From: Octopus sinensis
Lineage: Eukaryota
Direction: 5' to 3'
NCBI RefSeq assembly: GCF_006345805.1
Contig: NW_021825250.1
Location: forward strand, 1 to 15,940
Length of the DNA stretch: 15,940 nt
This document shows, in pieces, positions 1 through 15,940 of the stretch (position 1 is the first letter of the stretch; each line of letters starts with the position of its first letter). A program made the position numbers and the translations under genes. A model generated the notes under the pieces. That model was not told the origin of the DNA and did not search any database. It was given only the letters and a program-made list of their open reading frames with translations.

Positions 1-146
1 ACCTTATTCTCTCATATGTATATATATATATATTATAATATATATATTATATATATATATATATATAATACATCATACATACATGTGTGATGCACAGATT
101 TAAGAGCGAGCCATATTATATACAATACTCCATTGATTATGGTAAT

Positions 147-298
147 TCGTAACGTGGTTAGAAACTTGCTTTCCAACCATATGGTTCCGGGATCAGTCCC
201 ACTGCGTCGCAGCTGAGAAAAGTATCTTCTCCTACAGTCTCGTCCGACCAAAGCCCCGTGAGTGCAATTGGTAGACGGAAACTGAAAGAAGCCCGTCG
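147..298 (+). mobile_element. tRNA-derived SINE family A, 5' head only, diverged copy
   Basis: Aligns by eye with 483-646 and 686-849 (ccaaccatatggttccgggatcagtcccactgcgt...ggtagacggaaactgaaagaagcccgtcg); followed by an AT tract. Confidence 0.85.
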
Positions 299-482
299 TA
301 TTTATATATTTAATATACACAGATATGATGATGCCCTGATAAGGAAAGTTTGTCATGGAAGGAACGGCCTTGATTGTTAGTTTGTTCGCTGAGAGTTACT
401 CCGGGACAAACAACAACGATGACTTTAGGGACGATTATTGCAATAACAGCGACGATAGGAATATCGGAAACGTCTGCATAAT

Positions 483-645
483 AGGCGCCGGAGTGGCAGT
501 GTGGTAAGTAGCTTGCTTACCAACCACATGGTTCCGAGTTCAGTCCCACTGCGTGGCACCTTGGGTAATTGTCTTCTACTATAGCCTCGGGCCGACCAAA
601 GCCTTGTGAGTGGATTTGGTAGACGGAAACTGAAAGAATCCCGTC

Positions 646-646
<1 letters not shown>
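483..646 (+). mobile_element. tRNA-derived SINE family A, 5' head
   Basis: A-box-like tggcagtgtgg (494-504), B-box-like gagttcagtccc (536-547); ends ...gaatcccgtcg then (TA)n at 647-685. Confidence 0.9.
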
Positions 647-685
<39 letters not shown>

Positions 686-688
<3 letters not shown>

Positions 689-1082
689 TGCAGGAGTGGC
701 GGCGTGGTAAGTAGCTCGCTTACCAACCACATGATTCCTGGTTCAGTCCCACTGCGTGGCACCTTGGGCAAGTGTCTTCTACTATAGCCTCGGGATGATC
801 AAAGCCTTGTGAGTGGATTTGGTAGACGGAAACTGAAAGAACCCCGTCGTATATATGTATATATGTATGTGCCTGTTTGTGTGTCTGTGTTTGCGCCCCC
901 AACGTCTCTTGACAACCGATGCTGGTGTGTTTACGTCCCCGTCACCTAGCGGTTCGGCAAAAAGAGACCGATAAAATAAGTACTGGGCTTACAAAGAATA
1001 AGTACCCGGGGTCGATTTGATCGACTAAAGGCGGTGCTCCAGCATGGCCGCAGTCAAAATGACTGAAACAAGTAAAAGAGAG
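686..1082 (+). mobile_element. SINE family A, apparently full length (head + internal TA/TG microsatellite + body + LINE-like tail)
   Basis: Head 686-849 is close to 483-646; body 870-1082 matches 11221-11394; tail ggcggtgctccagcatggccgc (1030-1051) matches the LINE end at 13043-13064. Confidence 0.9.
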
Positions 1083-1561
1083 TAATAATAATATTATTGG
1101 CCAACAACAATAATAACAACGATAATATGAGAAACAAGAAGAAAGAGAAAGACGTCTGCGCCATCATTATCATCAACAAGAGGAATAATAAGAGGAAGGA
1201 CGCTGTCAATAATATGAATGTCAGGAATGATGTCGTCATCAGCGGAAGAAGATAACAGCTACAAGAGGAACAATTAAAAAATCTTCAGGAATATTAACAA
1301 CAACAATGACATCAGTAGCAGTAGCAGTGGCAGTAGTAGCAGGAGCAGTAGCAGCAGCAGTAGCAGCAGTAGCAGCAGCAGCAGCGGCAGTAGCAGCAGC
1401 AGCAGCAGCAGTAGCAGCGGCAGTAGCAGCAGCAGCAGCAGCAGCGCAGTCATCAGCAGCAGTAGCGCAGCACAGCAGTCAGCAGCAGCAGTAGTAGCAG
1501 TAGCAGCAGCAGTAGCAGCAGTAGCAGTAGCAGTAGCAGTAGTAGCAGTAGCAGCAGCAGT

Positions 1562-1602
<41 letters not shown>

Positions 1603-2991
1603 CAGTAGCAGCAGCAGCAGTAGCAGTAGCAGTAGCAGTAGCAGCAGCAGCAGCAGTAGTAGTAGCAGTAGTAGCAGCAGCAGCAGCAGTAGTAGCAGTA
1701 GCAGCAGCAGTAGAAGCAGCAGTAGCAGTAGCAGTAGCAGCAGCAGCAGCAGTAGTAGCAGCAGCAGTAGTAGCAGTAGCAACAGCAGTAGCAGCAGTAG
1801 CAGCAGCAGCAGTAGCAGCAGCAGTAGCAGCAGCAGTAGTAGCAGTACAGCAGCATAGCAGCAGTAGCAGCAGCAGTACGCAGTAGCAGTAGCAGTAGCA
1901 AGCAGCAGCAGTAGCAGCAGCTGTAGCAGCAGCAGCAGCAGTATCAGCAGCACAGCAGTACAGCAAGCAGCAGCAGCAGTAGCAGCACAGCCAGCATCAG
2001 CAGTAGCGAGCAGCATGGCAGTAGCAGCAGCAGCAGAGCAGCAGCATCATAGCATTAGCAGTAGCAGTAGCACAGCATGGCAGTAGCAGCAGAGCACAGC
2101 AGCAGCAAGTAGCAGCAGCAAGCACTAGAAGCAGAGCAGTAGCAGAGCATAGTTTTTTTCAATTTTTTTTAACGCAGTCAGTAGCACAGCAATAGCATAG
2201 CAGCAGTGGCCTAGCAGCAGCAGCACAGCAGCAGCAGCAGCAGCAGTCAGCTCACAGCAGCAGCACTAGAAGCAGCAGCAGTAGCAGCAGCAGCGCAGTA
2301 GCAGCAGCAGCACAGCAGCAGCAGCAGCATAGCAGCAGCAGTAGTAGTAACTGCAGCATTAGCAGCAATAGCAGTAGCACAGCACATCAGCAGCACATCA
2401 GCAACAATAACAATAAAGAAGGCTTTGGTAATAATAATAACAGCACCAAGAACAGAAAATAACTGCAACAACAACAGCAACAACAGCCGCAGCAAAAACA
2501 ACAATAGCAACAGCAGCAACAAAGAAAGCTTTAGTTAATAACAACAGCAACACCGTTAGCAGCAGCAACAGCAACAACAACAACAACAACAACAACGATA
2601 ACAGCAACAACAACAACAACAACAGTAACAGCCACAACAATAACGACAAAAGCGATAGCAACTGTAGCAGTAACAACAATAACAAAGAATTAGTAACAAT
2701 AACAACAACAACAGCGGCAGCAGAAATAATATTAACGACATCTTCATCATCATCATCATCATCACCACCATCGTAATCAACATCTTCATCATCATCACCA
2801 TTATCATCATCATCATCATCATCATCATCATCGTAATCATCCTCATCATCATCTTCATCATCACCAATATCATCATCATCATCATCGTAATCAACATCTT
2901 CATCATAATAACCATCACCATTATCATCATCATCATCATTATCATCATCATCATCGTAATCATCATCATCATCATCATCGTAATCAACATC

Positions 2992-3024
<33 letters not shown>

Positions 3025-3123
3025 GTAATCGTCATCATCATCATCGTAATCATCATCATCATCGTAATCATCATCATCGTCATCGCCATCATCATCATCA
3101 TCATCATCATCGTCGTCGTCATC

Positions 3124-3168
<45 letters not shown>

Positions 3169-3263
3169 GTAATCATCATCATCATCGTAATCATCATCAT
3201 CGTCATCGCCATCATCATCATCATCATCATCATCGTCGTCGTCATCATCATCATCATCACCAC

Positions 3264-3322
<59 letters not shown>

Positions 3323-3560
3323 ACAAGAGCAATTAGAAGACCGTTTCCGTCAACAAATACAACAGCGGCACTCACTACATGGACAAGAAAAAAAAAATCA
3401 ACAAAATATTAGGAACAACGACAAAAACAACAACAACAACAACAGCAACAACAACAAAATAACAACCGGAATGTCATCAACAACACAATGGGTACATCAT
3501 AACAAAACGCGAGCAGCAGCAGCGGCAGCAGCAGCAGCAGCAGACAACAACAGCAGCAAC
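1083..3560. repeat. Compound trinucleotide block: (CAG/TAG)n ~1306-2400, (CAA/TAA)n ~2400-2738, (CAT)n ~2739-3321, (CAA/CAG)n to ~3560
   Basis: Directly visible; explains the poly-A/L/C/D/M ORFs in the track. Confidence 0.97.
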
Positions 3561-3699
3561 AAAAACATTAGAGTTGTATAAAACAACGGAAGAAAAATTA
3601 AATTTTAAAAAAGATAAATGTAAAAAATAAAAAAATAAAAAAATAAATGGAAAGAAAAAATCGTACGAGGAAATCAATCTAATGACAATTAATGAACAA

Positions 3700-3835
3700 A
3701 TCAATAATTAGGTTTATATTTAATTATATTTAATGTATGGCGTATTAAATAGTTAACTAGAAATAATTATGTGGGGAGGTCGATAGATCGATAGATCGAT
3801 AGATCATAACATTAGTTTTGCTTTAATATGGTTTT
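3700..3835. repeat. ~1.5 units of an AT-rich ~90-bp minisatellite
   Basis: Contains gttaactagaaataattatgtgg...gatcgatagat, the same motifs as 5322-6075. Confidence 0.75.
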
Positions 3836-3837
3836 CC

Positions 3838-4421
3838 CATACATCATCCTGTGATGCACCTGGACATATAACTCTGTGATGTTTCCCTGAGACCATTAGT
3901 TGCTTCGGGTCTTTGAACAATTAGAAACCTTCACCCTGGTGATTCAGTCGGGGTTGATCAACCCCCAGGTTGTTAGATCTACCCGTGCTAGAACCACCCG
4001 TGTTAGCACTGCCCTTTCCAGGACTTGCACGTTTTGACCAACAGCCAACCATTTGGATTTTCCTCTACTGGGAGTTCGTTAGGTGTTTCGGGTCTTTAGA
4101 TATCAGACACCTTTATCCAAGCAATCTACCCAAAGTTGACTAAACCCCAGATTACACTCAGTTATCACGGCCCCATCCAGGGCTTTGCCCTCTTGATTCT
4201 CAGCCACGTTGATGTTGTTATTGTTACTGAGCTGCCTTCACAGCCAGCTTGACAACCTTCTGTTTACTGGCCCTTGTGACGCCCCTCAGCTTGTTATAAG
4301 CTCTATCTAGGGTCTGGACTGCAATCCGTCTACATCTCACCTCGAAGGGATCTCATCTTGTTTGTCACCCACTAATTTGGTTACAATTTCATCAGCTCAG
4401 CATATTTCCTTCTCTTTTGTT
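3838..4421 (-). mobile_element. Decayed 3' end of an RLE-type non-LTR retrotransposon (HERO-like), copy 1
   Basis: Minus strand 4419->4171, with stops and frameshifts, reads QKRRKYAELM..G*QTR*DPFEVRCRRIAVQTLDRAYNKLRGVTRASKQKVVKLAVKAAQ..STWLRIKRAKPW. This matches my recollection of HERO C-termini (ERKRAKY..GW..RC.P.EVGCRGF...AAE.ASRWLWIKRGEPW). It is followed by a 3' UTR with the perfect palindrome ggggttgatcaacccc (3950-3965). Confidence 0.8.
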
Positions 4422-4423
4422 TG

Positions 4424-4500
4424 ACCAGAAATAATTTCGTGGTTGAGATTGACGAATCGATAAATCCATAAATCAATAATTTAAGTTTGTGCTAACATAG
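4424..4500. repeat. One unit of the ~90-bp minisatellite between the two HERO-like copies
   Basis: ccagaaataatttcgtggttgagattgacgaatcgat...aataatttaagtttgtgctaacatag matches the 5322-6075 units. Confidence 0.7.
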
Positions 4501-4509
4501 ATTTTCAAT

Positions 4510-5315
4510 AGATCATCCTGTGATGTACTTGGACACATCATCTGTGATGTTTCGCGAGGTCATTGGGTGTTTGGAAACTTTCATCATCAAGACACATTTA
4601 TCCAGTGACCCAGCGAACATTTGACCATGCCCCAGCTTGTGTCAAGTTAGCATTACCCTTGGTTTCACTGCTCCTTCCAGGGCTCATACTTTCTGAACTG
4701 CAGCCTCATTCATGCATTCTCCGCTATCTACCCCGGCCAACCCTGTGGCTTTCCCACTACTGGGAGTTCATTAAGTGCTCCGAAAATTTCAACATCAGAC
4801 ACCATCACGCAGGTGATCCAACCAGGGTTTATGAGACCCCATTTGTGTCCAGTTAGCACTACACTTGACCACACAGCCACATCCAATCACCTTTGATCAA
4901 AAGCCTTTTTAAAGCAACCTTTATTCCTACAGCCAACCTTAAAGCCCTCCGCCTACTGGATGTTCAGTAGCTGTTGTGTGTCGTTTTAACATCAGACACC
5001 CTCATCCAGATGACTCAGCTGGAGTTGATCAACCCCAGGTTGCGTCTCATTAACACCACTACTTGTGGCACTGCCCCTTCCATGGCTCACCCCTCACATT
5101 GGCACAACCTCTGCTGCCTCCATAGCCAACCTAATGTCCTTCCGCCCACGGGGGCCCTATATTGCTCAGCATGGTCCAGGCTCTGCAGAGGAACTAGTCT
5201 GCAAATGTTCTGCATCCGACCCTCGGTGGAATCACACCTCGATTGCCAGCCATTCCTTTGGTATAACTCTACCAGCTCGGTATATTTCGTTCTCTTACTC
5301 TCGTTGAACGACAAA
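4510..5315 (-). mobile_element. Decayed 3' end of an RLE-type non-LTR retrotransposon (HERO-like), copy 2, with a triplicated ORF-end/UTR module
   Basis: Minus strand 5310->5074 with frameshifts reads FNESKRTKYTELVELYQRNGWQSRCDSTE/VGCRTFAD*FLCRAWTML../RKDIRLAMEAAEV../RGEPWKG. The marker atcagacacc recurs at 4991, 4794 and (degenerate) 4586. Confidence 0.82.
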
Positions 5316-5321
5316 CAATTA

Positions 5322-6075
5322 CACAGTGAGATAGAGAGGTAGATCGATATATCGATAAGTCAATAATTTAGTATAATGTTAACATAATTAATGATGGAGT
5401 ATTAATTAGTTAACCAGAAGGAACAAAGAATTATTTGGTATGACATACTGGTAGATTGATCGATACGTCAATAATTTGGTCTTGTGTTAATATATAGAGT
5501 ATTAATTAGAAATTAACTAGAGGTAATTATGCGTGGAGATAGACAGATCGATCAATAGATCAATAATCTATTTTTCTGTTAAAATAATGCTTGGATTATT
5601 AATAGGTTAACTAGAAATAATTATGTAGTGAGATAGAAAGATCGATATAGATCCGTAATATAGTTCGTGTTAACATAGTTAATGTATGGAGAATTAATTT
5701 GTTAGTTAAAAAGAGGGAATTATGCGGGGAGATCGACAGATCGATAATTTGCTTCTTTGTGTTAACATATTTAATGCAAGGAATACTTCATTAGTTAAGT
5801 AAAAATAATTATGTTTTGAGATAGTTAGATCGATAGATAGATTAGTAATTGAGTTTGTGTTGACATTTAATGACAGAGCATTAGTTATCTACAAGTTATT
5901 ATATGGTGAGATAGATAGATCGATGGATCGATAATTTAGTTTCCTGATAGAGTATTAGTTAACTACACGTAATTATATGGTGAGATAGGCAAATCTATGG
6001 ATCGATAATTGAGTTTGTTTTAACATATCTTATGATGGAATTAATTAGCTAGAAATAATTTCATGATGAGACAGA
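5322..6075. repeat. Diverged AT-rich minisatellite, ~8 units of ~75-110 bp
   Basis: A gagat(ag)-type marker recurs near 5328, 5440, 5536, 5629, 5729, 5818, 5908, 5982 and 6068; shared motifs are gatcgatagat, gtgttaacata and gttaactagaaataattatg. Confidence 0.85.
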
Positions 6076-6239
6076 ACAGGACAGAGATAGGTTAGTTTCA
6101 ATACGTTTACTGAATAATGACGGCGATAAAGAAAAGTACGAGTTAAGTACTGTACCTAACAAATCTACTATACCCCTATCTACGAAATTCTGGCCCTGTA
6201 CCTACATTGACTTGTCTTGGGCCCCCAGCTATCAATACT

Positions 6240-6469
6240 TATTTCTTTATTGCCCACAAGGGGCGAAACATAGAGGGGAATAACATGGACAGACAAAGGG
6301 ATTAAGTCGATTACATCGACCGCACTGCGTAACTGATACTTAATTTATTGACCCCGAAAGGATGAAAGGCAAAGTCGACCTCGGCGGAATTTGAACTCAG
6401 AACGCAGCGGCGGACAAAATACCACAAAGCATTTCGCCCGGTGTGCTAACGATTCTGCCAGCTTGCTCC
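6240..6469 (-). mobile_element. tRNA-derived SINE family B flanked by a 12-bp direct repeat
   Basis: Reverse complement aligns with 14996-15213 (ctggcagaatcgttagcac...cctttcatcctttcggggtcaataaattaagta); gctatcaatact occurs at 6228-6239 and 6470-6481. Confidence 0.9.
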
Positions 6470-6627
6470 GCTATCAATACTGTCGTAGGAGTCATGACAA
6501 ATCGTGAAACAATCTTTTTTGTCAACCTTCCCTAGTATGTTTGCCAGAGTTCGGCTCTCCGCTAAATGATTTACTCGCATTTTCTTTGATGTTACAATCA
6601 GACAGGCTTCATAGAATCGTTAATGCG

Positions 6628-6782
6628 AAGGTGGTAGTTTGGCAGAACCGCTAGAGCGTCGAAGGAAAAGCGTTGTAGCAATTCTTCCGGCGCTTTACGT
6701 TCTGAGTTCAAACCCTTCCAAGGTCAATTTCGCTCTTTAATCGATTCTGAGGTCGGTAAAATAAAGTACCAGACAATTATAG
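6628..6782 (+). mobile_element. SINE family B, 3'-truncated; part of a 174-bp duplicate of 8359-8532
   Basis: Motifs tttggcagaa...tacgttctgagttcaaa...ggtcggtaaaataaagtaccag; 167/174 identical to 8359-8532. Confidence 0.85.
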
Positions 6783-7124
6783 CAATAATCCACAAAAGAG
6801 TATAGCGAACTTGACGTGAACAATAGAGACTTCGACGATTCGGAGAGAGTCCTTCTTCAGAGAAAAGTTAACAGGAGAGAAATTAAAGAGATGCAACTGA
6901 GTTTTACGCGTTGTGTGTTAGGAAAAAAAGATCGGAACTGATAAAGAACGCAAGACCACCGGAGATTCATTTGCGGAACGGAAGCATACCTTAGACAGGA
7001 AGCATTCCCTGGACAGGAAGCTATTCTTTGGTATTGTATATCTATCCTACCCTAACCCTATCTACTCAATATTAACATAAATTTGTTTGAAATTTTAAGG
7101 TGTTTCCATTATTTTGTCCAACCC

Positions 7125-7176
<52 letters not shown>

Positions 7177-7195
7177 GTATATGTGTATATATTTA

Positions 7196-7268
7196 TAATA
7201 TTTTGTGAAATTTGATTTAGTATTTCTAAATTTAATTGTTTTCTGTAAGTTTGGAATAATATCCCCTC

Positions 7269-7270
<2 letters not shown>
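7196..7270 (+). repeat. Short TA-adjacent interspersed repeat, copy 1
   Basis: ttgtgaaattt...ctgtaagtttggaataatatcccctc aligns with 13935-14012; both run into (TA)n. Confidence 0.7.
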
Positions 7271-7319
<49 letters not shown>

Positions 7320-7474
7320 TTCTTTATTTCGTATATTTTCATCTGTCTTGCTTATTTTTACATTCTTGCATTTGCTGAAATTTTCTTGAGAACACACTCT
7401 TCTTGGTAAGGTGATTTGACGTCATCTTTAGCACATTAGGATTCATTTTGGTGGTCATTCCTCTTAGTTTGTAT

Positions 7475-7533
<59 letters not shown>

Positions 7534-7679
7534 CATATATTATATTAAATTAGAGATAAAACCACTATTAGGCAAATCAACAATGAAAAACTTAAGCCAA
7601 TACATAAAATTAATTAATTTATATTATTTTAAATATATATCAAAAGTATTAAAAGTTTAATAAAAGATAATGAGTAAAA

Positions 7680-7748
7680 CACAACGATCGTTCATGGCTG
7701 TCCAATTCGTAATAATTCGAGTTATGGTTATAGTCAATCTTCAGGTGA
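7680..7748 (-). ncRNA. Degenerate type I hammerhead relic, Penelope-like, in a TA-flanked island (~7546-7780)
   Basis: Minus strand reads cac-CTGAAGA-[ttgactat...acagccat]-GAAC-gatc-GTT-gtg. One A of GAAA is missing and stem II has mismatches; stem III loop is a palindrome (gatc). Confidence 0.4.
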
Positions 7749-7812
7749 TTGAAATATTATCTTAGCGAGGTTTAGCAATGATGTATATATACATTTATAT
7801 GTATATACATAC

Positions 7813-7906
<94 letters not shown>

Positions 7907-8008
7907 GTATATATATGTGTGTGTATACATAAACTTTCCCTTCATATATATATATATACATATGCATGTATACATATATATGCAAGTGTCTATGTGTGTA
8001 AGAAATAG

Positions 8009-8045
8009 GGCGTGCTCCATCATGACTGAAACAAGTATAAGAATA
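8009..8045 (+). mobile_element. Tiny, internally deleted 3' tail of SINE family A
   Basis: ggcgtgctccatcatgactgaaacaagtataagaata compared with ggcggtgctccagc...atgactgaaacaagtaaaagag at 1030-1080. Confidence 0.55.
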
Positions 8046-8244
8046 CACACGCACACACACTCACACAGGCACGCATATTTATATGTACACTCACACATCT
8101 CGTCGTCGTATATTTTTTTTAGATACAGCGTATCGAAGTCTGAAATATCGTTGGCAATATGGAAGCGCGAACGCGTGAGGACCTGTCAATGACCTGCTTG
8201 AAATAGTAACGTTATCTCCCTCCAATCACGTTCTGGTTTCCAAT

Positions 8245-8325
8245 CAAAGATTGAATTTGCCTTTCATCATTCTGGGGGTCAATAAAATCAAACACGGGTC
8301 AAGTATCGATCTCGATCGCATCGAT
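8245..8325 (+). mobile_element. Old, degenerate SINE family B central segment
   Basis: tttgcctttcatcattctgggggtcaataaaatc resembles tttacctttcatcctttcagggtcgatgaaataag at ~15095-15130. Confidence 0.55.
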
Positions 8326-8377
8326 AATTCTCACATATAACATTTCTGGTTTTCTTTCTCATAGAATCGTTAATGCG

Positions 8378-8597
8378 AAGGTGGTAGTTTGGCAGAACCG
8401 CTAGAGCGTCGAAGGAAATGCGTTGTAGCAATTCTTCCGGCGCTTTACGTTATGAGTTCAAACCCTTCCAAGGTCAATTTTGCTCGTTAATCGACTCCGA
8501 GGTCGATAAAATAAAGTACCAGACAATTATAGGTGTTTGATGTAATCACTTTACTCCTTGCCTCCAAAACGTTCTGTCTTGTGCCGAAATCAGAAGC
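8378..8597 (+). mobile_element. SINE family B
   Basis: Same as 6628-6782 but continues through gatgtaatc...cttgtgccgaaat, as in 15150-15205. Confidence 0.88.
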
Positions 8598-8614
8598 AGT
8601 TGTTATTACTGTTG

Positions 8615-8785
8615 GAAGAAAAAGAAATAGGAGGCGTAAGAGAATAAAGAACGAAATAGAAAATGAAGAAGAATGAAGAAAATGAAGAAGAAAATAAAGA
8701 ATGAAGAAGAAAAAAAGTGAAGAAAGAAGAAAAGAATGGAGAATGATGAAAAAGAATACGAAAAAGAAGTTGATTAAAAAAAAAA
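8615..8785. repeat. Purine-rich (GAA/AAT) low-complexity tract
   Basis: gaagaaaatgaagaa-type repeats are visible. Confidence 0.85.
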
Positions 8786-9028
8786 TATATATATATATAT
8801 ATATTTATTAATCAATATAGGGAGGCAAAAAAATTTTGTAGAATTCTTTTGCCCCCAGCGGCCTAGTGGGAAAAAATTAAATAGTCATAACCATTTTTAA
8901 GTTCAATATCACAATCAAGGAACGGCCATAATAGGCCATACCCACTAGAAAAACAGCCAAAAAGCTTCAACCGCAAAATAACATTAATTCCGTAAACCAG
9001 GAGAAAATTAAAAAACATTTACCCTGAA

Positions 9029-9134
9029 ATTCCTTATACGATGCACCGTTTCGTCTACTGTTTAATGGTAAACTAACCTGATAAATTAAATCAAGCCAAT
9101 CTACCATAGGCCCTTAGATTCATCAGTAAGGAAT
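9029..9134 (-). ncRNA. Type I hammerhead ribozyme, copy L1 (core intact)
   Basis: Minus strand: attcctta-CTGATGA-atcta...tagac-GAAA-cgg tgca tc-GTA-taaggaat; predicted cut between 9037 and 9036. Confidence 0.8.
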
Positions 9135-9519
9135 AGCCAAATCGGAACAGATATTTTTCACGAGGCATTCCCGTCCATGCCTCGCCAATATCTGACCTAA
9201 AATTTTCAAATCGTCGCACACTCGCGCCAAATTTATCGGCAGCAAATAAATATAAGCCGCCGATTCCATTACGGAACCAACCAGAAAATTCATGATTAAT
9301 CAATATAGGGAGGCAAAATAATTTTGTAGAATTCTTTTGCCCCCAGCGGCCTAGTGGGAAAAAATTAAATAGTCATAAACCATTTTTAAGTTCAATATCA
9401 CAATCAAGGAACGGCCATAATAGGCCATTCACCCACTAGAAATAACAGCCAAAAAGCTTCAACCGCAAAATACATTAATTCCGTAAACCAGGAGAAAATT
9501 AAAAAACATTTACCCTGAA

Positions 9520-9625
9520 ATTCCTTATATCGATGCACCGTTTCGTCTACTGTTTAATGGTAAACTAACCTGATAATTAAATCAAGCCAATCTACCATAG
9601 GCCCTTAGATTCATCAGTAAGGAAT
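9520..9625 (-). ncRNA. Type I hammerhead, copy L2 (1-nt insertion next to the cleavage triplet)
   Basis: Same as L1 but reads tcgATAtaagg instead of tcGTAtaagg; this is a real lesion or a consensus error. Confidence 0.65.
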
Positions 9626-9815
9626 AGCCAAATCGGAACAGATATTTTTCACGAGGCATTCCCGTCCATGCCTCGCCAATATCTGACCTAAAATTTTCAA
9701 ATCGTCGCACTCGCGCCAAATTTATCGGCAGCAAATAAATATAAGCCGCCGATTCCATTACGGAACCAACCAGAAAATTCATAATTAATCAATATAGGGA
9801 GGCAAAAATTTGGCT

Positions 9816-9922
9816 ATTCCTTACTGATGAATCTAAGGGCCTATGGTAGATTGGCTTGATTTAATTTAATCAGGTTAGTTTACCATTAAACAGTAGACGA
9901 AACGGTGCATCGTATAAGGAAT
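9816..9922 (+). ncRNA. Type I hammerhead ribozyme, copy R1 (core intact)
   Basis: Stem I attcctta 9816-9823 / taaggaat 9915-9922; CTGATGA 9824-9830; GAAA 9899-9902; stem III ACGG/TCGT around loop TGCA; GTA 9912-9914, predicted cut after 9914. Confidence 0.85.
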
Positions 9923-10300
9923 TTCAGGGTAAATGTTTTTTAATTTTCTCCTGGTTTACGGAATTAATGTTATTTTGCGGTTGAAGCTTTTTGGCTGTTA
10001 TTTCTAGTGGGTGAATGGCCTATTATGGCCGTTCCTTGATATATTGAACTTAAAAATGGTTTATGACTATTTAATTTTTTCCCACTAGGCCGCTGGGGGC
10101 AAAAGAATTCTACAAAATTTTTTTGCCTCCCTATATTGATTAATTATGAATTTTCTGGTTGGTTCCGTAATGGAATCGGCGGCTTATATTTATTTGCTGC
10201 CGATAATTTGGCGCGAGTGCGGCGATTTGAAAATTTTAGGTCAGATATTGGCGAGGCATGACGGGAATGCCTCGTGAAAAATATCTGTTCCGATTTGGCT

Positions 10301-10407
10301 ATTCCTTACTGATGAATCTAAGGGCCTATGGTAGATTGGCTTGATTTAATTTAATCAGGTTAGTTTACCATTAAACAGTAGACGAAACGGTGCATCGTAT
10401 AAGGAAT
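10301..10407 (+). ncRNA. Type I hammerhead ribozyme, copy R2 (core intact)
   Basis: CTGATGA 10309-10315, GAAA 10384-10387, GTA 10397-10399; cut site is 485 nt from that of R1. Confidence 0.85.
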
Positions 10408-10789
10408 TTCAGGGTAAATGTTTTTTAATTTTCTCCTGGTTTACGGAATTAATGTTATTTTGCGGTTGAAGCTTTTTGGCTGTTATTTCTAGTGGGTGAA
10501 TGGCCTATTATGGCCGTTCCTTGATTGTGATATTGAACTTAAAAATGGTTTATGACTATTTATTTTTTCCACTAGGCCGCTGGGGGCAAAAGAATTCTAC
10601 AAAATTTTTTTGCCTCCCTATATTGATTAATTATGAATTTTCTGGTTGGTTCCGTAATGGAATCGGCGGCTTATATTTATTTGCTGCCATAAAATTTGGC
10701 GTCGAGTGCGACGATTTGAAAATTTTAGGTCAGATATTGGCGAGGCATGGACGGAATGCCTCGTGAAAAATATCTGTTCCGATTTGGCT

Positions 10790-10893
10790 ATCCTTACTGA
10801 TGAATCTAAGGGCCTATGGTAGATTGGCTTGATTTAATTTAATCAGGTTAGTTACCATTAAACAGTAGACGAACGGTGCATCGTATAAGGAAT
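10790..10893 (+). ncRNA. Type I hammerhead, copy R3 (GAAA reduced to GAA)
   Basis: CTGATGA 10797-10803; gacgaacgg lacks one A; single-base losses also in stem I and the stem II domain. Confidence 0.6.
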
Positions 10894-11062
10894 TTCAGGG
10901 TAAATGTTTTTTAATTTTCTCCTGGTTTACGGAATTAATGTTATTTTGCGGTTGAAGCTTTTTGGCTGTTATTTCTAGTGGGTGAATGGCCTATTATGGC
11001 CGTTCCTTGATTGTGATATATATATATATATATATTGATGTTTGGGAATCTCTGATGTTTTT

Positions 11063-11147
11063 TCGGCTGATGAGTACGAGCCACCTATATTTACTGCAAT
11101 TTTTGTAGCTTTATTAAAGATGTCCTCGTACGAAACAATTGTACCGA
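11063..11147 (+). ncRNA. Solo type I hammerhead ribozyme, unrelated to the array unit
   Basis: Stem I TCGG 11063-11066 / CCGA 11144-11147; CTGATGA 11067-11073; stem II GTACGAG 11074-11080 / CTCGTAC 11125-11131; GAAA 11132-11135; palindromic stem III ACAATTGT 11135-11142; GTA cleavage triplet 11141-11143. Confidence 0.85.
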
Positions 11148-11220
11148 TATATTGATCCATTCTTGTTGCTTTTTTCCTATATATATATATATGTGTGTGT
11201 GTCTGTGTGTGTGTGTGTGT

Positions 11221-11394
11221 GTGTTTGTGAGTCTGTGTTTGTCCCCCTCAACATCATTTCACAACCGATGTTAGTGTGTTTATGTCCCCGTAACCTAGCA
11301 GATCAGCAAAAAAAAAAAGAAACCGATAGAATAAGAACTAGGCTTACAAAGAATAAGTCCTGGGGTCGATTTGTTCGACTAAAGGCGGTGCTCC
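11221..11394 (+). mobile_element. SINE family A, body only (no head, tail truncated)
   Basis: Aligns with 870-1040; preceded by (TA)n(GT)n at 11178-11220. Confidence 0.85.
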
Positions 11395-11531
11395 TTTATA
11401 CATTGTTTTAGTCGACACACCTTCCGACAAACAGCAGGCCTAGTGTGAAAATTTGAGACAATTGTTGTTGTTGCTAGTGTCGTGGTTGTTAATATTATTA
11501 ACGTTAACATTAATGATTGGGGCGACACCTA

Positions 11532-11795
11532 TGAGAGAGAGAGAGAGAGAGAGAGAGGGGGAGAAATATAGGGGAGAGAAATGGAGAGAGAGAGAAAGAG
11601 GTAATAGTGTGAGAGATGTATTTATTACAAATAGTGGGAAAGAAACACTGAGAAAGTGGGAGTCGTGGGTTGGGTAGCAGGAAGAGTGAAATATTGAATG
11701 GTGGGCAGGAAGACTGCTTTTGTGCGTTTACGTTTGTATACAAATATATGCTTGTATACACACGTGAGTATACACACGTGAGTGTGTATACAAGC

Positions 11796-11830
<35 letters not shown>

Positions 11831-11871
11831 TACACCACATGAATTATATATATATATATATACACCACATG

Positions 11872-11907
<36 letters not shown>

Positions 11908-12003
11908 CACATCAATGGCATATATGTATGTATACATGTGTACACACATGCACTTATATACATACGTATGCAGTATACAGAGAACAAGTGGCGTAAGAAA
12001 TGT

Positions 12004-12034
<31 letters not shown>

Positions 12035-12190
12035 AGAAATGTAAACACAGAGAGAGAGAGAGAAGAAATGTAAACACAGAGAGAGAGAGAGAGGGAGAGA
12101 AAAAAGAAAGAATGAGAATCAGGCAGAAGGAGAAGGAGTGAAAAAGGGGAAGAGAGCGATGGACTGGGAGAAGGAAGGGAAAAGACAATA
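11532..12190. repeat. Mixed (GA)n, (TA)n and (CA)n microsatellites with short local duplications
   Basis: aagaaatgtaaac(ac)agagag x3 (~11995-12090); tacaccacatgaattatata x2 (~11831-11880); gtatacacacgtga x2 (~11755-11782). Confidence 0.85.
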
Positions 12191-12800
12191 CTTCAAAGAA
12201 ATGTTCAAGGTTAAACAACATAATATTCTGAACAAGCGATTGCATGATACTACCAGATCAAACACGCACATACATACATATACACATATTGATAAGCAAT
12301 CGATGTCTTTCTTTACTATGTATCTATTCCACAATTCCAGCTGTATCCATTTTGAAATGGACAGTGTTTTAGACAATTCCTAGATGCCATAATGAATTTT
12401 AATTCAAAACCATCATATTTTCTCTTCCTCTCTCTCCATAAACTCTCAACTCGCTTCTGCACGACAGCACACTGGCTTCAGTAAGGCTATGTTAATCATT
12501 TGAGACGCAATTGTCGTTTTGTCATGCAAAATTATGTCAGCTTTGCTGGACATAAACATGTGATCAAGTGTGGCAAAACTTCAAGCATTAATTTGGTTTA
12601 TGTCAGTTTTTCTGTAACATACGAACTTTTGTTATGTTTCTACAGCGTTGTTCTTGCAACAAAGTTGGAATTGATTCGTGTTCGGAAGTAAATACATACA
12701 TATAAAACATACATACACACGCACATATGTATATATATTCACGATGCACGATGTAGATGTCGAGTGAAATAGCGTGTCGCATAATCTTGGCTATAAGCGT

Positions 12801-12950
12801 AGGCGCAGCTGTGTGATAAGAGCTTTGCTTCCCAGCCTCGTAGCTCCAGGTTCAGTGCACTGCGACGCTGGCACTTTGAGCAAGACTCTTTTACTATAGC
12901 CTCGGGCCGATCAAAGTGTGTTTCATAGACGGAAACTGAAAAAGCCCGTC

Positions 12951-12951
<1 letters not shown>
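12801..12951 (+). mobile_element. SINE family A, 5' head, diverged
   Basis: ggttcagtgcactgcg...actatagcctcgggccgatcaaag...gacggaaactgaaaaagcccgtcg followed by (TA)n. Confidence 0.85.
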
Positions 12952-12997
<46 letters not shown>

Positions 12998-13006
12998 ATA
13001 TATATA

Positions 13007-13324
13007 TCCTTAAATCCTTAAAAATGTTTTAGCCCGAAGGCCGCGGCCATGCTGGGGCACCACCGCTGAATGAGCTACACTAGTTTGTGAATCCACCTCT
13101 GATACGTGGCACTTGATCAACAAGGGAGTTCGATGCTGCTGCCCGCATCCGTGTCTCCTGTCGTGAGGTAGGTTCATCTGGGACTCCCAACAAGAAGAGA
13201 TCCAGTTTAGTTTTAAAGAAACCCACATCCACACCATGTAAGTCTCTCAGGCATTTAGGGAGGATGTTAAAGAGCTGTGGTCCTCTGAAACCGAAGCTGT
13301 TGCAGTATCTGGACCTGTATTTTG
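13007..13324 (-). mobile_element. 5'-truncated LINE 3' end (CR1/L2-group-like ORF2 C-terminus, 3' UTR and tail)
   Basis: Open frame 13322->13080: KYRSRYCNSFGFRGPQLFNILPKCLRDLHGVDVGFFKTKLDLFLLGVPDEPTSRQETRMRAAASNSLVDQVPRIRGGFTN*. It resembles CR1-group C-termini (G..LFN.LP..R....FK.KLD.FL..VPDEP) as I recall them; tail (tttaagga)x2. Confidence 0.85.
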
Positions 13325-13325
13325 A

Positions 13326-13385
<60 letters not shown>

Positions 13386-13453
13386 ATATATTATTAAAAA
13401 AAAAACAAGTTTGAAAATGCCACTATATAAAATAAACTTTAATTTTCTTAGAG

Positions 13454-13503
13454 ATTTTACATGTTTCGGTTTTTCTTGAAAAAACAAACCTCATCAAAAG
13501 TAT
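13454..13503 (-). ncRNA. Degenerate minimal type I hammerhead, Penelope-like
   Basis: Minus strand: ctt-TTGATGA-GGTTT...AAACC-GAAA-CAT-GTA-aaat. C3 is U, stem III is the palindrome ACATGT, stem I is weak. Confidence 0.5.
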
Positions 13504-13639
13504 TTTTAAAAGTTAAGTGTAATGAAAAAGTTCATAATTGTTTCTTACTAGTCTCAACAGAGTACACATGGTGGTGTTTTGTGGTGGTGGGGGGCATAAT
13601 GTGCGTTGACTAGATTCGTTGGCTGTAATTGTGGAAATG

Positions 13640-13790
13640 ACCAGTGGCCGAAACAGCAGTAGTAGCAGAGACTGTTGGTCGTAGTAGTAGTGACCATGGT
13701 GGTGATGGTTGGAATTGCAGCAGCAGTTCATTAGCTGTAGTAGTAGCAGCAGCAGCAGCGGTTGGAGTTGTAGTAGCAGTTCATTGGCTG
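13640..13790. repeat. Degenerate (GTA/GCA/GTG) triplet tract
   Basis: Directly visible. Confidence 0.7.
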
Positions 13791-13805
13791 AACTATATAT
13801 ATATA

Positions 13806-13924
13806 ATTAAGAGAAATAACCTCTATTAAGCAATAATATTTATTATAGTATATTCAAATTTTCTATATGATATAGATAAAGTCTTTCACAATTGAATTAC
13901 TTAATAGGGGTTATTTCTCTTAAT
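13806..13924. mobile_element. 119-bp inverted-repeat element within (TA)n
   Basis: attaagagaaataacctctattaagcaat (13806-13834) and the inverted copy at 13896-13924 match at 27/29. Confidence 0.75.
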
Positions 13925-13934
13925 TATATATACA

Positions 13935-14012
13935 TATTGTATATTGTGAAATTTTATTTGGAATTGCTAAATTGAACTTTTTCCTGTAAGTTTGGAATTA
14001 TATTCCCTCCTT
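13935..14012 (+). repeat. Short TA-adjacent interspersed repeat, copy 2
   Basis: Aligns with 7196-7270. Confidence 0.7.
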
Positions 14013-14287
14013 TTATATATATGTGTGCGTGTTTGTGTTTGTGTGTGTTTGTGTGTGTTAGTGTGTATGTGTTTGTGTGTGCACGTGTGTGTACGTATGC
14101 GTGTGTGTGTATGTGTGCCAAAGGAAGTTATTTTTACATAGCTTTCTCATTTCCAAAAGAAGAAAAAGCTGAAGAATACTTTCAAAATTGCCGTTGAATC
14201 GTGATTGTAAAGGCTTGAAGTGTTTGCGCGTATCTGTAGGGTTGATGCACCCGAGAAACACGTATGAGTCATCTATATAATTGTGAG

Positions 14288-14319
<32 letters not shown>

Positions 14320-14334
14320 TCTTTATTCAGATAT

Positions 14335-14390
<56 letters not shown>

Positions 14391-14398
14391 TGAGAGGT

Positions 14399-14541
14399 CT
14401 CCATCCACCAAATCCATTTACAAGGATTTGGCTTGCCGGGTGCTACAGTAGAAACTCGCTGAAGGTGCCACGCAATGGCACAGAAACAAAATAAACCATG
14501 GGTCTGGTAAGCAATCCCCTTACCACGCAGCTACATCTATG
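14399..14541 (-). mobile_element. SINE family A head, diverged
   Basis: Reverse complement reads gctgcgtggtaagggg...ttgcttacc...ttgcgtggcacctt...ccttgtaaatggatttggtggatgga. Confidence 0.8.
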
Positions 14542-14641
14542 TTTCTTGCACTGGCATAAGCATTACTTTTTACCGTCCACCGTTTTTACTTTCTTTGTCG
14601 ATAACTTCATATCACAGCGGTTAAATTCTATCGATTTTCCA

Positions 14642-14976
14642 ATGAGTTTAGATCAGACTACATATTAGACACTGCATATTGTATGAATTCAAAAGGAAGC
14701 GGCAAGAAATATTCATTCTGTCTATGGAAATGAAGCTTTAAGTGTCTTGAAATGCCAACAATAGTTTGCTCGGTTACACTCGGGAAATTCTTTCTCTTGC
14801 AGACTCCCCTAGGGTTCTGACAATAATGAGGTGCTGAAATCCAAAGTAAATTGTATGAAAATTAGCAAAACAGTTCAATTCAATTCATTTTTCAATCATA
14901 AAATACCTTCGTGAACTAACAAAAATACCCAAACCAGGTGAGTGGCTCTCTCGTTAATTTGGCTTCCTATGATTTC
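14642..14976 (+). pseudogene. Mariner-family transposase relic, N-terminal DNA-binding region
   Basis: With frameshifts: MSLDQT/HIRHCILYEFKR/AARNIHSVYGNEALSVLKCQQ*FARLHSGN.../NNEVLKS.../WLP(H)DF, matching mariner HIRH..LYEF....AARNI..VYG...CQ.WF..F.SG and the WVPHEL motif. Confidence 0.8.
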
Positions 14977-14995
14977 AATATACAGTTTGGTGGTA

Positions 14996-15213
14996 AAAGC
15001 GGTGAGCTGGCGGAATCGTTAGCATGCCGGGCAAACTGCTCAGCGGCATTTCGTTTCTCTTGACGTTGTGAGGTCATATTCCGTCAAGGTCAACTTTACC
15101 TTTCATCCTTTCAGGGTCGATGAAATAAGTACCAGTTACGTACTGAAGTCGATGTAATCGACTTATCACCTGCCTATTTAATTCCTGGCCTTGTGCCGAA
15201 ATTTGAAGCCAAT
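14996..15213 (+). mobile_element. SINE family B
   Basis: gcggtgagctggcggaatcgttagcatgccgggc...cctttcatcctttcagggtcgatgaaataagtaccag...cttgtgccgaaatttgaa. Confidence 0.9.
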
Positions 15214-15308
15214 ATATAAGTTCATGGTGATTTTTAATAATACTTTCAATCTGACTCCTGATAAACAGTAAAAGTAATTACCCAATCTTATATATATATA
15301 TATATATA

Positions 15309-15496
15309 GGGAGAGATTACGAAAAAATCAAAAGACGAAGTCAGGTGGTGTACAAAACAAACAGATGTATTAGTATAACGCTCAGGGATAGAAAATGTCT
15401 TTTACGTTTCGAGCCTACGCTCTTCTACAGAAGGGGACGCAGAAAAAACAAGGAGAGAAGAAAAAGTGTGTAGTGGCTAACGATCTATCATGACGA

Positions 15497-15498
<2 letters not shown>
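15309..15498 (-). mobile_element. Penelope-like terminal fragment between two (TA)n tracts, with a variant minimal hammerhead at 15397-15436
   Basis: Minus strand: ctt-CTGTAGA-A-GAGC gtag GCTC-GAAA-C-GTA-aaagac. Stem II is a perfect 4 bp, stem III is the palindrome ACGT, core position 6 is U instead of A. Confidence 0.55.
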
Positions 15499-15551
<53 letters not shown>

Positions 15552-15563
15552 TATATTATATAT

Positions 15564-15789
15564 AAGGGAAAGGAGAAAATGCTGACAAAATAATTTAAGT
15601 AAGGGAGAGTGTATTTAATTAGGTGAAAGTTCTTTTTACCGGTTGCACATTTGTTATGCTTATCAAAAGATATTTTTTAAGGGAGATAGAGTTCCTTTCT
15701 GATAGATTTTTTTCTCTTATCTGAAAAGATAAATACACTCTCCCTTACTTAAATTATTTTGTCAGCATTTTCTTCATTTCCTTTTTTTA
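15564..15789. mobile_element. Inverted-repeat (MITE-like) element within (TA)n
   Basis: Perfect 43-bp inverted repeat at 15575-15617 / 15730-15772, 112-bp spacer, imperfect outer extension. Confidence 0.8.
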
Positions 15790-15860
15790 TATATCACAAC
15801 TCGTGTTCCACATCTCCTTTTTTAAATATATATATATATATATAATTATACGTGTGTGTA

Positions 15861-15940
15861 GAGGCGCATGGCTCAGTGGTTAGAGCGTCGCGTCTAGCGT
15901 GAGGTTGTGAGTTCGAATCCCGGACCGGGCTGCGCGTTGT
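15861..15940 (+). mobile_element. tRNA-derived SINE family C, 5' head, cut by the window end
   Basis: A box tggctcagtgg and B box gttcgaatcc, but no tRNA acceptor stem closure; the sequence runs on into gggctgcgcgttgt. Confidence 0.8.

Follow-up and report, generated by a model that had tools for sequence, protein, structure and literature searches.

A contig of the Octopus sinensis genome (NW_021825250.1, NCBI RefSeq assembly GCF_006345805.1) carries at 8807–11019 two head-to-head arrays of a ~491-bp unit, lying within a (TA)n microsatellite and containing five type I hammerhead ribozyme motifs, one per unit. The stretch analysed comprises positions 1 to 15,940 of the forward strand, and its full 15,940 nucleotides are referred to here as the window. 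We consider it probable that the locus is one recent insertion of a Penelope-dependent, non-autonomous element of the retrozyme type, with a ribozyme that is probably active only in double-hammerhead form. The class of element, its ribozyme and the proposed life cycle have already been described; the retrozyme organisation would be a new cephalopod record within that known class. The evidence comes from the sequence of a single locus.

The extent of the locus given in an initial annotation of this DNA, 8807–11019, is recovered by three approaches. Tandem Repeats Finder identifies a plus-strand array at 9808–11019 with a period of 485 bp, 2.5 copies and 97% matches, and a repeat search finds two more copies of the unit at 8807–9807 as the reverse complement of the plus set, with a spacing of 488–492 nt. 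Units were cut at the predicted cleavage sites and then aligned, giving a consensus of 491 nt with a GC content of 37%; in a BLAST search this consensus covers 8807–11019 gap-free, with no further match in the window. In the sense direction the arms lead away from each other, with 9807/9808 as their common origin. The minus arm is 1001 bp long (2.04 units) and runs from unit position ~210 to position 234, reached at 8807; the plus arm, of 1212 bp (2.47 units), runs from unit position 385 to position 134, reached at 11019. Along the forward strand the components are:

8785–8806, no strand: left flank, (TA)10 (8785–8804) plus TT, adjoining the 3′ end of the minus arm
8807–9036, minus strand: last (3′) partial unit of the minus arm, unit positions 1–234, stopping in the left (TA)n
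9037–9527, minus strand: one complete monomer of the minus arm, cleavage site to cleavage site, 491 nt
9528–9807, minus strand: first unit of the minus arm, 5′-truncated, from unit position ~210 at the junction
9807–9808, no strand: head-to-head junction of both 5′-truncated ends, GGCAAAAA|TTTGGC, unit position ~210 against 385
9808–9914, plus strand: first unit of the plus arm, 5′-truncated, from unit position 385, just upstream of the ribozyme
9915–10399, plus strand: complete monomer of the plus arm, 485 nt
10400–10885, plus strand: complete monomer of the plus arm, 486 nt, the copy with most indels
10886–11019, plus strand: last partial unit of the plus arm, unit positions 1–134, stopping in the right (TA)n
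11016–11035, no strand: right flank, (AT)10 microsatellite, adjoining the 3′ end of the plus arm

The copies differ by ~20 indel events, nearly all of 1 nt, as against 3–4 true substitutions over 2.2 kb. Such an excess of single-base indels is a sign of long-read noise, of a single very recent event, or of the two together, and the pattern suggests that an incompletely polished long-read assembly lies behind it.

The hammerhead motifs recur at intervals of 485–491 nt. The initial annotation had counted five copies at this spacing, and both the motif search and the unit alignment bear it out. The sequence CUGAUGA…GAAA is found on the plus strand at 9824–9902 and 10309–10387 and on the minus strand at 9617–9541 and 9126–9049; the fifth copy has CUGAUGA at 10797–10803 of the plus strand, but there GAAA is reduced to GAA and stem I has lost 1 nt. 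Under a strict descriptor, with contiguous helices around CUGANGA/GAAA/UH, the three-helix topology is complete in three of the five. Each of these three has an 8-bp stem I, a stem III of ACGG/UCGU with a UGCA cap and a GUA triplet, just as had been noted from the sequence at the outset, and the cuts then predicted, after 9914 and 10399, fall at the sites that the strict descriptor predicts. The individual motifs are:

9029–9134, minus strand: full topology, predicted cut after 9037 (minus-strand reading), A10.1 at 9119
9520–9625, minus strand: CUGAUGA and GAAA intact, topology broken by an additional A (CGAUA) in stem III, 3′ strand
9816–9922, plus strand: full topology, predicted cut after 9914, A10.1 at 9831, C11.1 at 9898
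10301–10407, plus strand: full topology, predicted cut after 10399, A10.1 at 10316, C11.1 at 10383
10788–10893, plus strand: GAA-C (GAAA minus one A), 1-nt deletion in stem I, defective as assembled

Since the copies differ almost solely by 1-nt indels, the lesions in the two ‘defective’ ribozymes may be read noise. The descriptor used in the field for the catalytic centre of hammerheads, CUGANGA / GAAAY / RUH (PMC7229834 supplement), corresponds here to CUGAUGA, GAAAC and GUA in three copies, and the layout is that of type I, in which helices II and III are closed and helix I is open. At a length of 68 nt, helix II comprises 4 pairs, an internal loop and then a 19-bp hairpin. The hairpin has a predicted stability of −26.6 kcal/mol in the sense strand, against −11.7 kcal/mol in the antisense, where five G·U pairs turn into A·C.

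Comparison with known ribozymes brings out a close resemblance to one from a mollusc. The halves of the motif at 9824–9835 and 9893–9904 (and equivalents) agree with the ribozyme of the mussel retrozyme Mg353 at 11 of 12 and 12 of 12 nucleotides, respectively; ACTGATGAaTCT compares with ACTGATGAgTCT, where the sole difference is G10.1 to A, and GTAGACGAAACG is identical. Outside these two ribozyme halves BLAST found no similarity between the unit and the mussel and coral retrozymes. The match to Mg353 may reflect a shared molluscan ancestry of the ribozyme, or coincidence.

The predicted folding suggests how such a ribozyme might act. On its own, one ribozyme domain is predicted to adopt an inactive fold, with UGAUG of the core paired to CAUCG in helix III; its active fold is 3 kcal/mol above the minimum free energy (MFE) structure, and the helix III hairpin is worth just −0.2 kcal/mol. 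The helix III strand, ACGGUGCAUCGU, is self-complementary when G·U pairs are allowed, with a duplex energy of −17.5 kcal/mol. When two copies are folded in trans the MFE structure is a domain-swapped double hammerhead, at −89.1 against 2 × −38.9 kcal/mol. In cis too, with a tandem transcript of 622 nt, the double hammerhead is the MFE structure, its paired helix III strands lying 491 nt from each other. Its helix III is formed of 12 bp, two of them G·U. As the monomer is predicted to be inactive alone, cleavage would need two tandem copies. A dimeric mechanism thus predicts cleavage of the multimeric transcript and protection of the finished monomer or circle. Such a mechanism is that of newt satellite 2 and of the amphibian retrozymes (PMC6155905, PMC7229834).

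The monomer as a whole is also predicted to be strongly self-paired. The MFE of the circular form is −154.9 kcal/mol, compared with −114.4 ± 6.2 kcal/mol for shuffled sequences (z = −6.6), with 59% of nucleotides paired, and the fold of the linear monomer has z = −5.4. It is non-coding. The initial annotation saw no credible open reading frame (ORF) in the unit and this is upheld, in that the longest stop-to-stop frame in a consensus multimer is 68 codons and the ORFs of the unit are without a Pfam match and without relatives in 5.8 billion protein clusters. When its 70-amino acid ORF was used in a protein-word search for ORFs on other copies, no candidate emerged. There are no terminal direct repeats besides the units themselves, although the motifs for a primer-binding site and a polypurine tract were not specifically searched.

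The manner in which the arrays are inserted provides a further line of evidence. Both outer (3′) ends run into (TA)10, at 8785–8804 and 11016–11035. Tracts of (TA)n with n of at least 5 make up 4.6% of the window, and if independent, two given points would both fall within 3 nt of such a tract with a chance of ~0.3%. The 5′-truncated ends of both arms meet at 9807/9808, and the junction is not mirror-symmetric. Two diverging arms are the geometry generated by twin priming in target-primed reverse transcription, a process reportedly set out for L1 by Ostertag and Kazazian in 2001. The L1 case, too, has two diverging segments with their 3′ ends at the target flanks and their 5′-truncated ends joined with ~1 nt of microhomology, as here; in contrast, the present segments exceed the template unit (2.0 and 2.5 units), needing a circular or multimeric template. 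Since each arm is longer than one unit, the template would have been either an uncleaved multimer or a circle copied through more than two turns, and the sequence fits either. The enzyme was likely a Penelope-type reverse transcriptase and endonuclease rather than L1 ORF2p. Craig et al. (2021) describe insertions of Penelope-like elements (PLEs) as partial tandems with an adjacent inverted 5′-truncated copy, and (TA)n is drawn as a preferred target in their general scheme of PLE structure; in the text it is for the Naiad clade, one without canonical hammerheads, that a bias to (TA)n is reported (PMC8557442). As it reads at this locus, the insertion architecture adds support to the retrozyme interpretation, beyond the arguments of the initial annotation. 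Two fragments with minimal hammerheads of Penelope type, situated beside (TA)n no more than 2.5 kb away (see below), count in the same direction.

A life cycle can be proposed from these elements. A multimeric sense transcript would be made, in which neighbouring ribozymes pair their palindromic helix III strands into the predicted 12-bp helix of a double hammerhead, and cutting after GUA would release monomers of ~490 nt. By analogy with work on coral, mussel and axolotl, a host tRNA ligase of the RtcB type would circularise the monomer, and the single ribozyme within the circle would refold into an inactive form, so that the circle is protected. The geometry of the locus suggests that the GIY-YIG endonuclease and reverse transcriptase of a PLE would then nick a (TA)n tract and make more than one turn in copying the RNA, be it circular or multimeric, generating tandem units, and that priming at both DNA ends would give two diverging arms whose 5′-truncated ends meet mid-locus.

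A number of observations weigh against this interpretation. The most direct is at the base of helix II, where there is an A·C mismatch (CUGAUGA-A…C-GAAA) in five of the five copies. The G10.1–C11.1 pair is highly conserved and present in nearly all hammerheads (PMC4209133), and its replacement by A·C could cripple catalysis. Thus of the three intact cores of the initial annotation the full topology stands, yet the cores are not fully intact. We rejected an alternative register, with the extra A after A9 as the ‘unpaired nucleotide’ of the Penelope type, because C11.1 would then be left unpaired too; the A·C reading agrees with the GUCU/AGAC stem of the mussel ribozyme. There is a UUCA bulge after 8 bp of helix I and an internal loop after five positions of helix II, and no conserved contact nucleotides for a tertiary contact of loop 1 with loop 2 are recognisable in the motif of the unit. 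The mussel retrozyme ribozymes likewise lack most of the loop–loop contact nucleotides. Nor is there evidence from covariation, because all five copies stem from one event.

The covariance models also fail. The initial annotation had proposed an Infernal search with type I models as a check, and its outcome is unfavourable. Hammerhead_1 of Rfam (RF00163; 45 positions, gathering threshold 34 bits) gave no match to the unit motif at the gathering score in the whole window, and none at E ≤ 10 in 8700–11300 (2.6 kb) or on the 141-nt motif alone. Matches of other Rfam models (snoRNA, U7 and sRNA) at E = 2–8 were dismissed as noise. Our own model, R1, built from four experimentally validated retrozyme ribozymes (PMC7229834 supplement), reached only stem I plus CUGAUGA via a local end with its filters off (11.5 bits). 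We ascribe both failures to the 60-nt insert in helix II, which defeats either model. As R1 is therefore not a fair test of the core, the motif was instead compared manually, position by position, with the four validated ribozymes, and all helix positions pair except 10.1–11.1. A MAFFT alignment of seven trimmed hammerheads misaligned the 3′ half, and no counting of pairs was drawn from it.

The remaining difficulties concern the unit as a whole and its surroundings. The antisense strand is also more structured than its own shuffled sequences (z = −4.75), so that global stability alone cannot set the polarity; the strand asymmetry of the global fold (−4.75 antisense against −5.4 sense) was accordingly dropped as a proof of it. 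In the predicted structures it is the ribozyme together with the G·U pairs of helix II that define polarity. The 20 frames of at least 55 codons in the whole window that are not of low complexity have no significant Pfam match, and hence there is no reverse transcriptase or GIY-YIG endonuclease in the 16 kb. Finally, patterns specific to the unit or to a second hammerhead nearby (see below) occur zero times in two metagenome, one viral and two prokaryotic collections, none of which holds cephalopod genomes, and these yielded no other genomic copy or transcript of the unit. The initial reading of the locus as a retrozyme is thus partly sustained, by the tandem non-coding units of ~490 bp, one type I motif in each, the GC content of 37%, the self-paired predicted circle and the weak palindromic helix III, and it is weakened by the lack of a match to Hammerhead_1 and by the A·C at 10.1–11.1.

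What else could the locus be? The main rival, which we regard as unlikely and yet the most serious of those considered, is a dead relic. The change of G10.1 to A and the oversized helix II would have ended catalysis, leaving a small repeat, satellite-like or retro-copied, from which neither monomeric nor circular RNA is made, its multi-unit arms generated by reverse transcription of an uncleaved multimeric transcript or by duplication at the DNA level. The presence of A·C in every copy, the absence of a match in Rfam and the further lesions in two of five copies would all be expected, minimal Penelope-type hammerheads are reported to be poor cleavers in vitro (PMC4209133), and arms longer than one unit need no circle, as an uncleaved multimer suffices. 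Yet all the other core and helix positions are kept, and the axolotl ribozyme Ax353, validated experimentally, has a U·U mismatch at 10.1–11.1 together with a GUA site, and shows weak cleavage as a monomer but efficient cleavage as a dimer (PMC7229834). Moreover the predicted MFE structure of the dimer is the active double hammerhead, which is not expected of a decayed motif, and the near-identity of the copies indicates that the element was very recently active with this ribozyme sequence. We rank after this, as improbable, the pseudo-long terminal repeat (pLTR) region of a Penelope element or an internally deleted autonomous copy, the locus being then a heavily 5′-truncated tandem and inverted Penelope insertion. 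PLEs bear hammerheads in their pLTRs, they insert as partial tandems with inverted 5′-truncated copies and (TA)n targeting appears in their general scheme, with the text reporting it for the Naiad clade that is without canonical hammerheads (PMC8557442); Xenopus retrozyme families are sister to pLTRs in a 2026 vertebrate preprint, and the geometry of the locus is the same. However, the units are arranged head-to-tail with no coding sequence between them, no reverse transcriptase or GIY-YIG domain lies in the window, and the unit ribozyme, with its 8-bp helix I and a real helix III, is unlike the minimal type, to which the second hammerhead is much closer.

The inverted layout might in principle be an artefact of assembly, from a fold-back or chimeric noisy long read, with the true locus a single direct array. 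The inter-copy differences, nearly all 1-nt indels, are a sign of incomplete polishing. A fold-back would be mirror-symmetric, whereas the arms start at ~210 and 385 and are 1001 and 1212 bp in length, and we therefore reject it; the asymmetric junction and unequal arms, and the joining of both outer ends to unique flanks through (TA)n, make any artefact of this kind very improbable. We can give hardly any credence to a chance hammerhead-like match in an ordinary tandem repeat, for all that Rfam finds no match. A relaxed descriptor (stems of at least 5, 3 and 2 bp) was matched 14 times in 2000 dinucleotide shuffles, or 0.007 per shuffled window, to be set against helices of 8, 4 (+19) and 4 bp; the window holds two further independent hammerhead motifs, and the base of stem II is the same as that of the mussel ribozyme, apart from G10.1 to A.

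We also considered that the ribozyme might be gated by editing. Deamination of A to I at 10.1 (9831 and 10316; T at 9119 on the plus strand) would create an I–C pair equivalent to G10.1–C11.1, and cleavage and circles would become dependent on ADAR. Apart from A10.1 opposite C11.1 there is no departure from the canonical hammerhead core, and this mismatch lies at the foot of helix II, double-stranded over ~30 bp. An A:C mismatch in double-stranded RNA is the context best edited by ADAR deaminases, and the coleoid cephalopods edit their RNA on an exceptional scale. We nonetheless regard this as a long shot. Read-through of 8807–11019 could generate ~1 kb of antisense followed by ~1 kb of sense sequence, and thus a long and near-perfect hairpin of double-stranded RNA, which would likely be a substrate for ADAR or for small-RNA pathways.

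If the locus is a retrozyme insertion, as we think probable, its closest relatives are the non-LTR (long terminal repeat) retrozymes, described from coral (Amil224), mussel (Mg353) and axolotl (Ax330 and Ax353), and by bioinformatics from many invertebrate phyla (PMC7229834). These are likewise head-to-tail non-coding repeats, a few hundred bp in length, with one type I hammerhead each, lacking LTRs and ORFs, with a highly self-paired predicted circle, and their GC content of <45–50% compares with 37% here. The axolotl retrozyme has a weak palindromic helix III favouring dimeric cleavage, as is predicted for the unit, and the GUA site and the mismatch at 10.1–11.1 of Ax353 are also shared, being U·U there and A·C here; the base of stem II is the same as that of Mg353 except for G10.1 to A. 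There are differences. The unit (485–491 nt) is longer than the 170–400 nt reported for these retrozymes, for which a range of 150–450 bp is also given (PMC7229834), helix II is 68 nt in place of ~4 bp plus a small loop, A·C replaces G–C at 10.1–11.1, and the array is split into two inverted arms. The class is characterised by expression as linear and circular RNA of unit length, which for the present unit is a prediction. A 2026 vertebrate preprint reports consensus lengths of 51–972 bp, a range that includes the present unit, with mostly no more than seven repeats per array and a relatedness to the pLTRs of PLEs.

In newt satellite 2 and the amphibian hammerhead repeats (Forster et al. 1988, reviewed in PMC6155905) tandem repeats carry a single ribozyme that is too weak in helix III, and an extended helix III forms across two copies, as we predict here, where helix III could form 4 pairs in the monomer and 12 in the duplex, two of the latter being G·U. 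Satellite 2 is a large satellite, in contrast to the 4.5 units of this locus. With the PLEs (PMC4209133, PMC8557442) the locus shares partial tandems plus an inverted 5′-truncated copy, (TA)n as the target and type I hammerheads with a palindromic helix III. These elements have an ORF for reverse transcriptase and GIY-YIG endonuclease between their pLTRs, which the window lacks, and the unit ribozyme departs from Penelope hammerheads in its 8-bp helix I and in having neither G10.1–C11.1 nor the extra nucleotide after A9.

How new is this for cephalopods? The giant squid genome has 235 loci annotated as Hammerhead_1 by Rfam (PMC6962438), so that a hammerhead motif in a cephalopod genome is no novelty. 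Penelope-like families have been reported from Octopus vulgaris. For octopus and the other cephalopods, the literature searched mentions neither retrozymes nor elements with a self-cleaving ribozyme. The initial annotation knew of no description from a cephalopod, and this stands for the retrozyme organisation though not for the hammerhead motif as such. If this is confirmed, the known range of hammerhead retrozymes would come to include one more molluscan lineage, in which both the unit and helix II are unusually large. Of more use is the footprint of insertion, with tandem units of more than one turn, two arms departing from a 5′-truncated junction and 3′ ends lying in (TA)n. Such a footprint would be expected if a Penelope-type endonuclease and reverse transcriptase had copied circular or multimeric RNA. 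Animal retrozymes have so far been tied to Penelope by co-occurrence and pLTR similarity, and counting such footprints genome-wide would provide an independent test of that link.

Two further hammerheads are found within 2.5 kb of the array, both near (TA)n:

11061–11149, plus strand: second hammerhead, unrelated to that of the unit, predicted cut after 11143, in a ~140-bp fragment at 11036–11177
13458–13500, minus strand: third, degenerate minimal hammerhead, model match 13496–13458, the range taking in helix I

The fragment that holds the second hammerhead has (TA)n on both sides and lies just beyond the right (TA)n of the array. This hammerhead keeps G10.1–C11.1 in a canonical core; its helix I is of 4 bp, its helix II of 7 bp closed by a loop of 44 nt, and its helix III, ACAAUUGU, is palindromic throughout. 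Among Rfam models Hammerhead_1 matches it best, with the whole model aligned, at 14.2 bits and E = 0.8 against a gathering score of 34; both this hammerhead and the unit motif carry loop 2 inserts of 48–60 nt that are penalised by the 45-position model. The minimal Penelope hammerhead has a helix I of 4–5 bp, a helix II of 7–8 bp, G10.1–C11.1, a palindrome that takes in 15.2–16.2 and loop 3, and an additional nucleotide following A9, before 10.1 (PMC4209133). The second hammerhead agrees in the helix lengths, the G–C pair and the palindrome, but the extra nucleotide after A9 is absent and loop 2 has 44 nt. From its sequence it looks like a 3′-terminal piece of a PLE. The third hammerhead has the sequence UUGAUGA (C3 to U; core from 13497), with GGUU/AACC and ACAUGU; it scores 15.6 bits (E ~0.008) with our own covariance model, and the (TA)n tract at 13325–13391 is ~65 nt downstream of it. 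Thus three unrelated sequences carry the one motif with differing helix sequences, each with (TA)n downstream.

Some other features of the window may be recorded. An open frame on the minus strand at 13083–13373 ends ‘…FRGPQLFNILPKCLRDL…FKTKLDLFLLGVPDEP’; it has no Pfam match and may resemble the C-terminus of ORF2 of a long interspersed element. Sequence resembling a short interspersed element (SINE) is present at 490–868, as a 203-bp tandem duplication with 92% identity, and at 11240–11400, as a SINE-like tail after a (TG)n tract; both presumably resemble the abundant SINEs of octopus. ARAGORN found no tRNA genes in the window, and no tRNA in either of these SINE-like sequences. At 1313–3322 there is an almost unbroken trinucleotide microsatellite of ~2 kb, comprising in this order (CAG)n, CAA/CAG-rich repeats and 584 bp of (CAT)n, and this yields long, spurious ORFs of low complexity on both strands.

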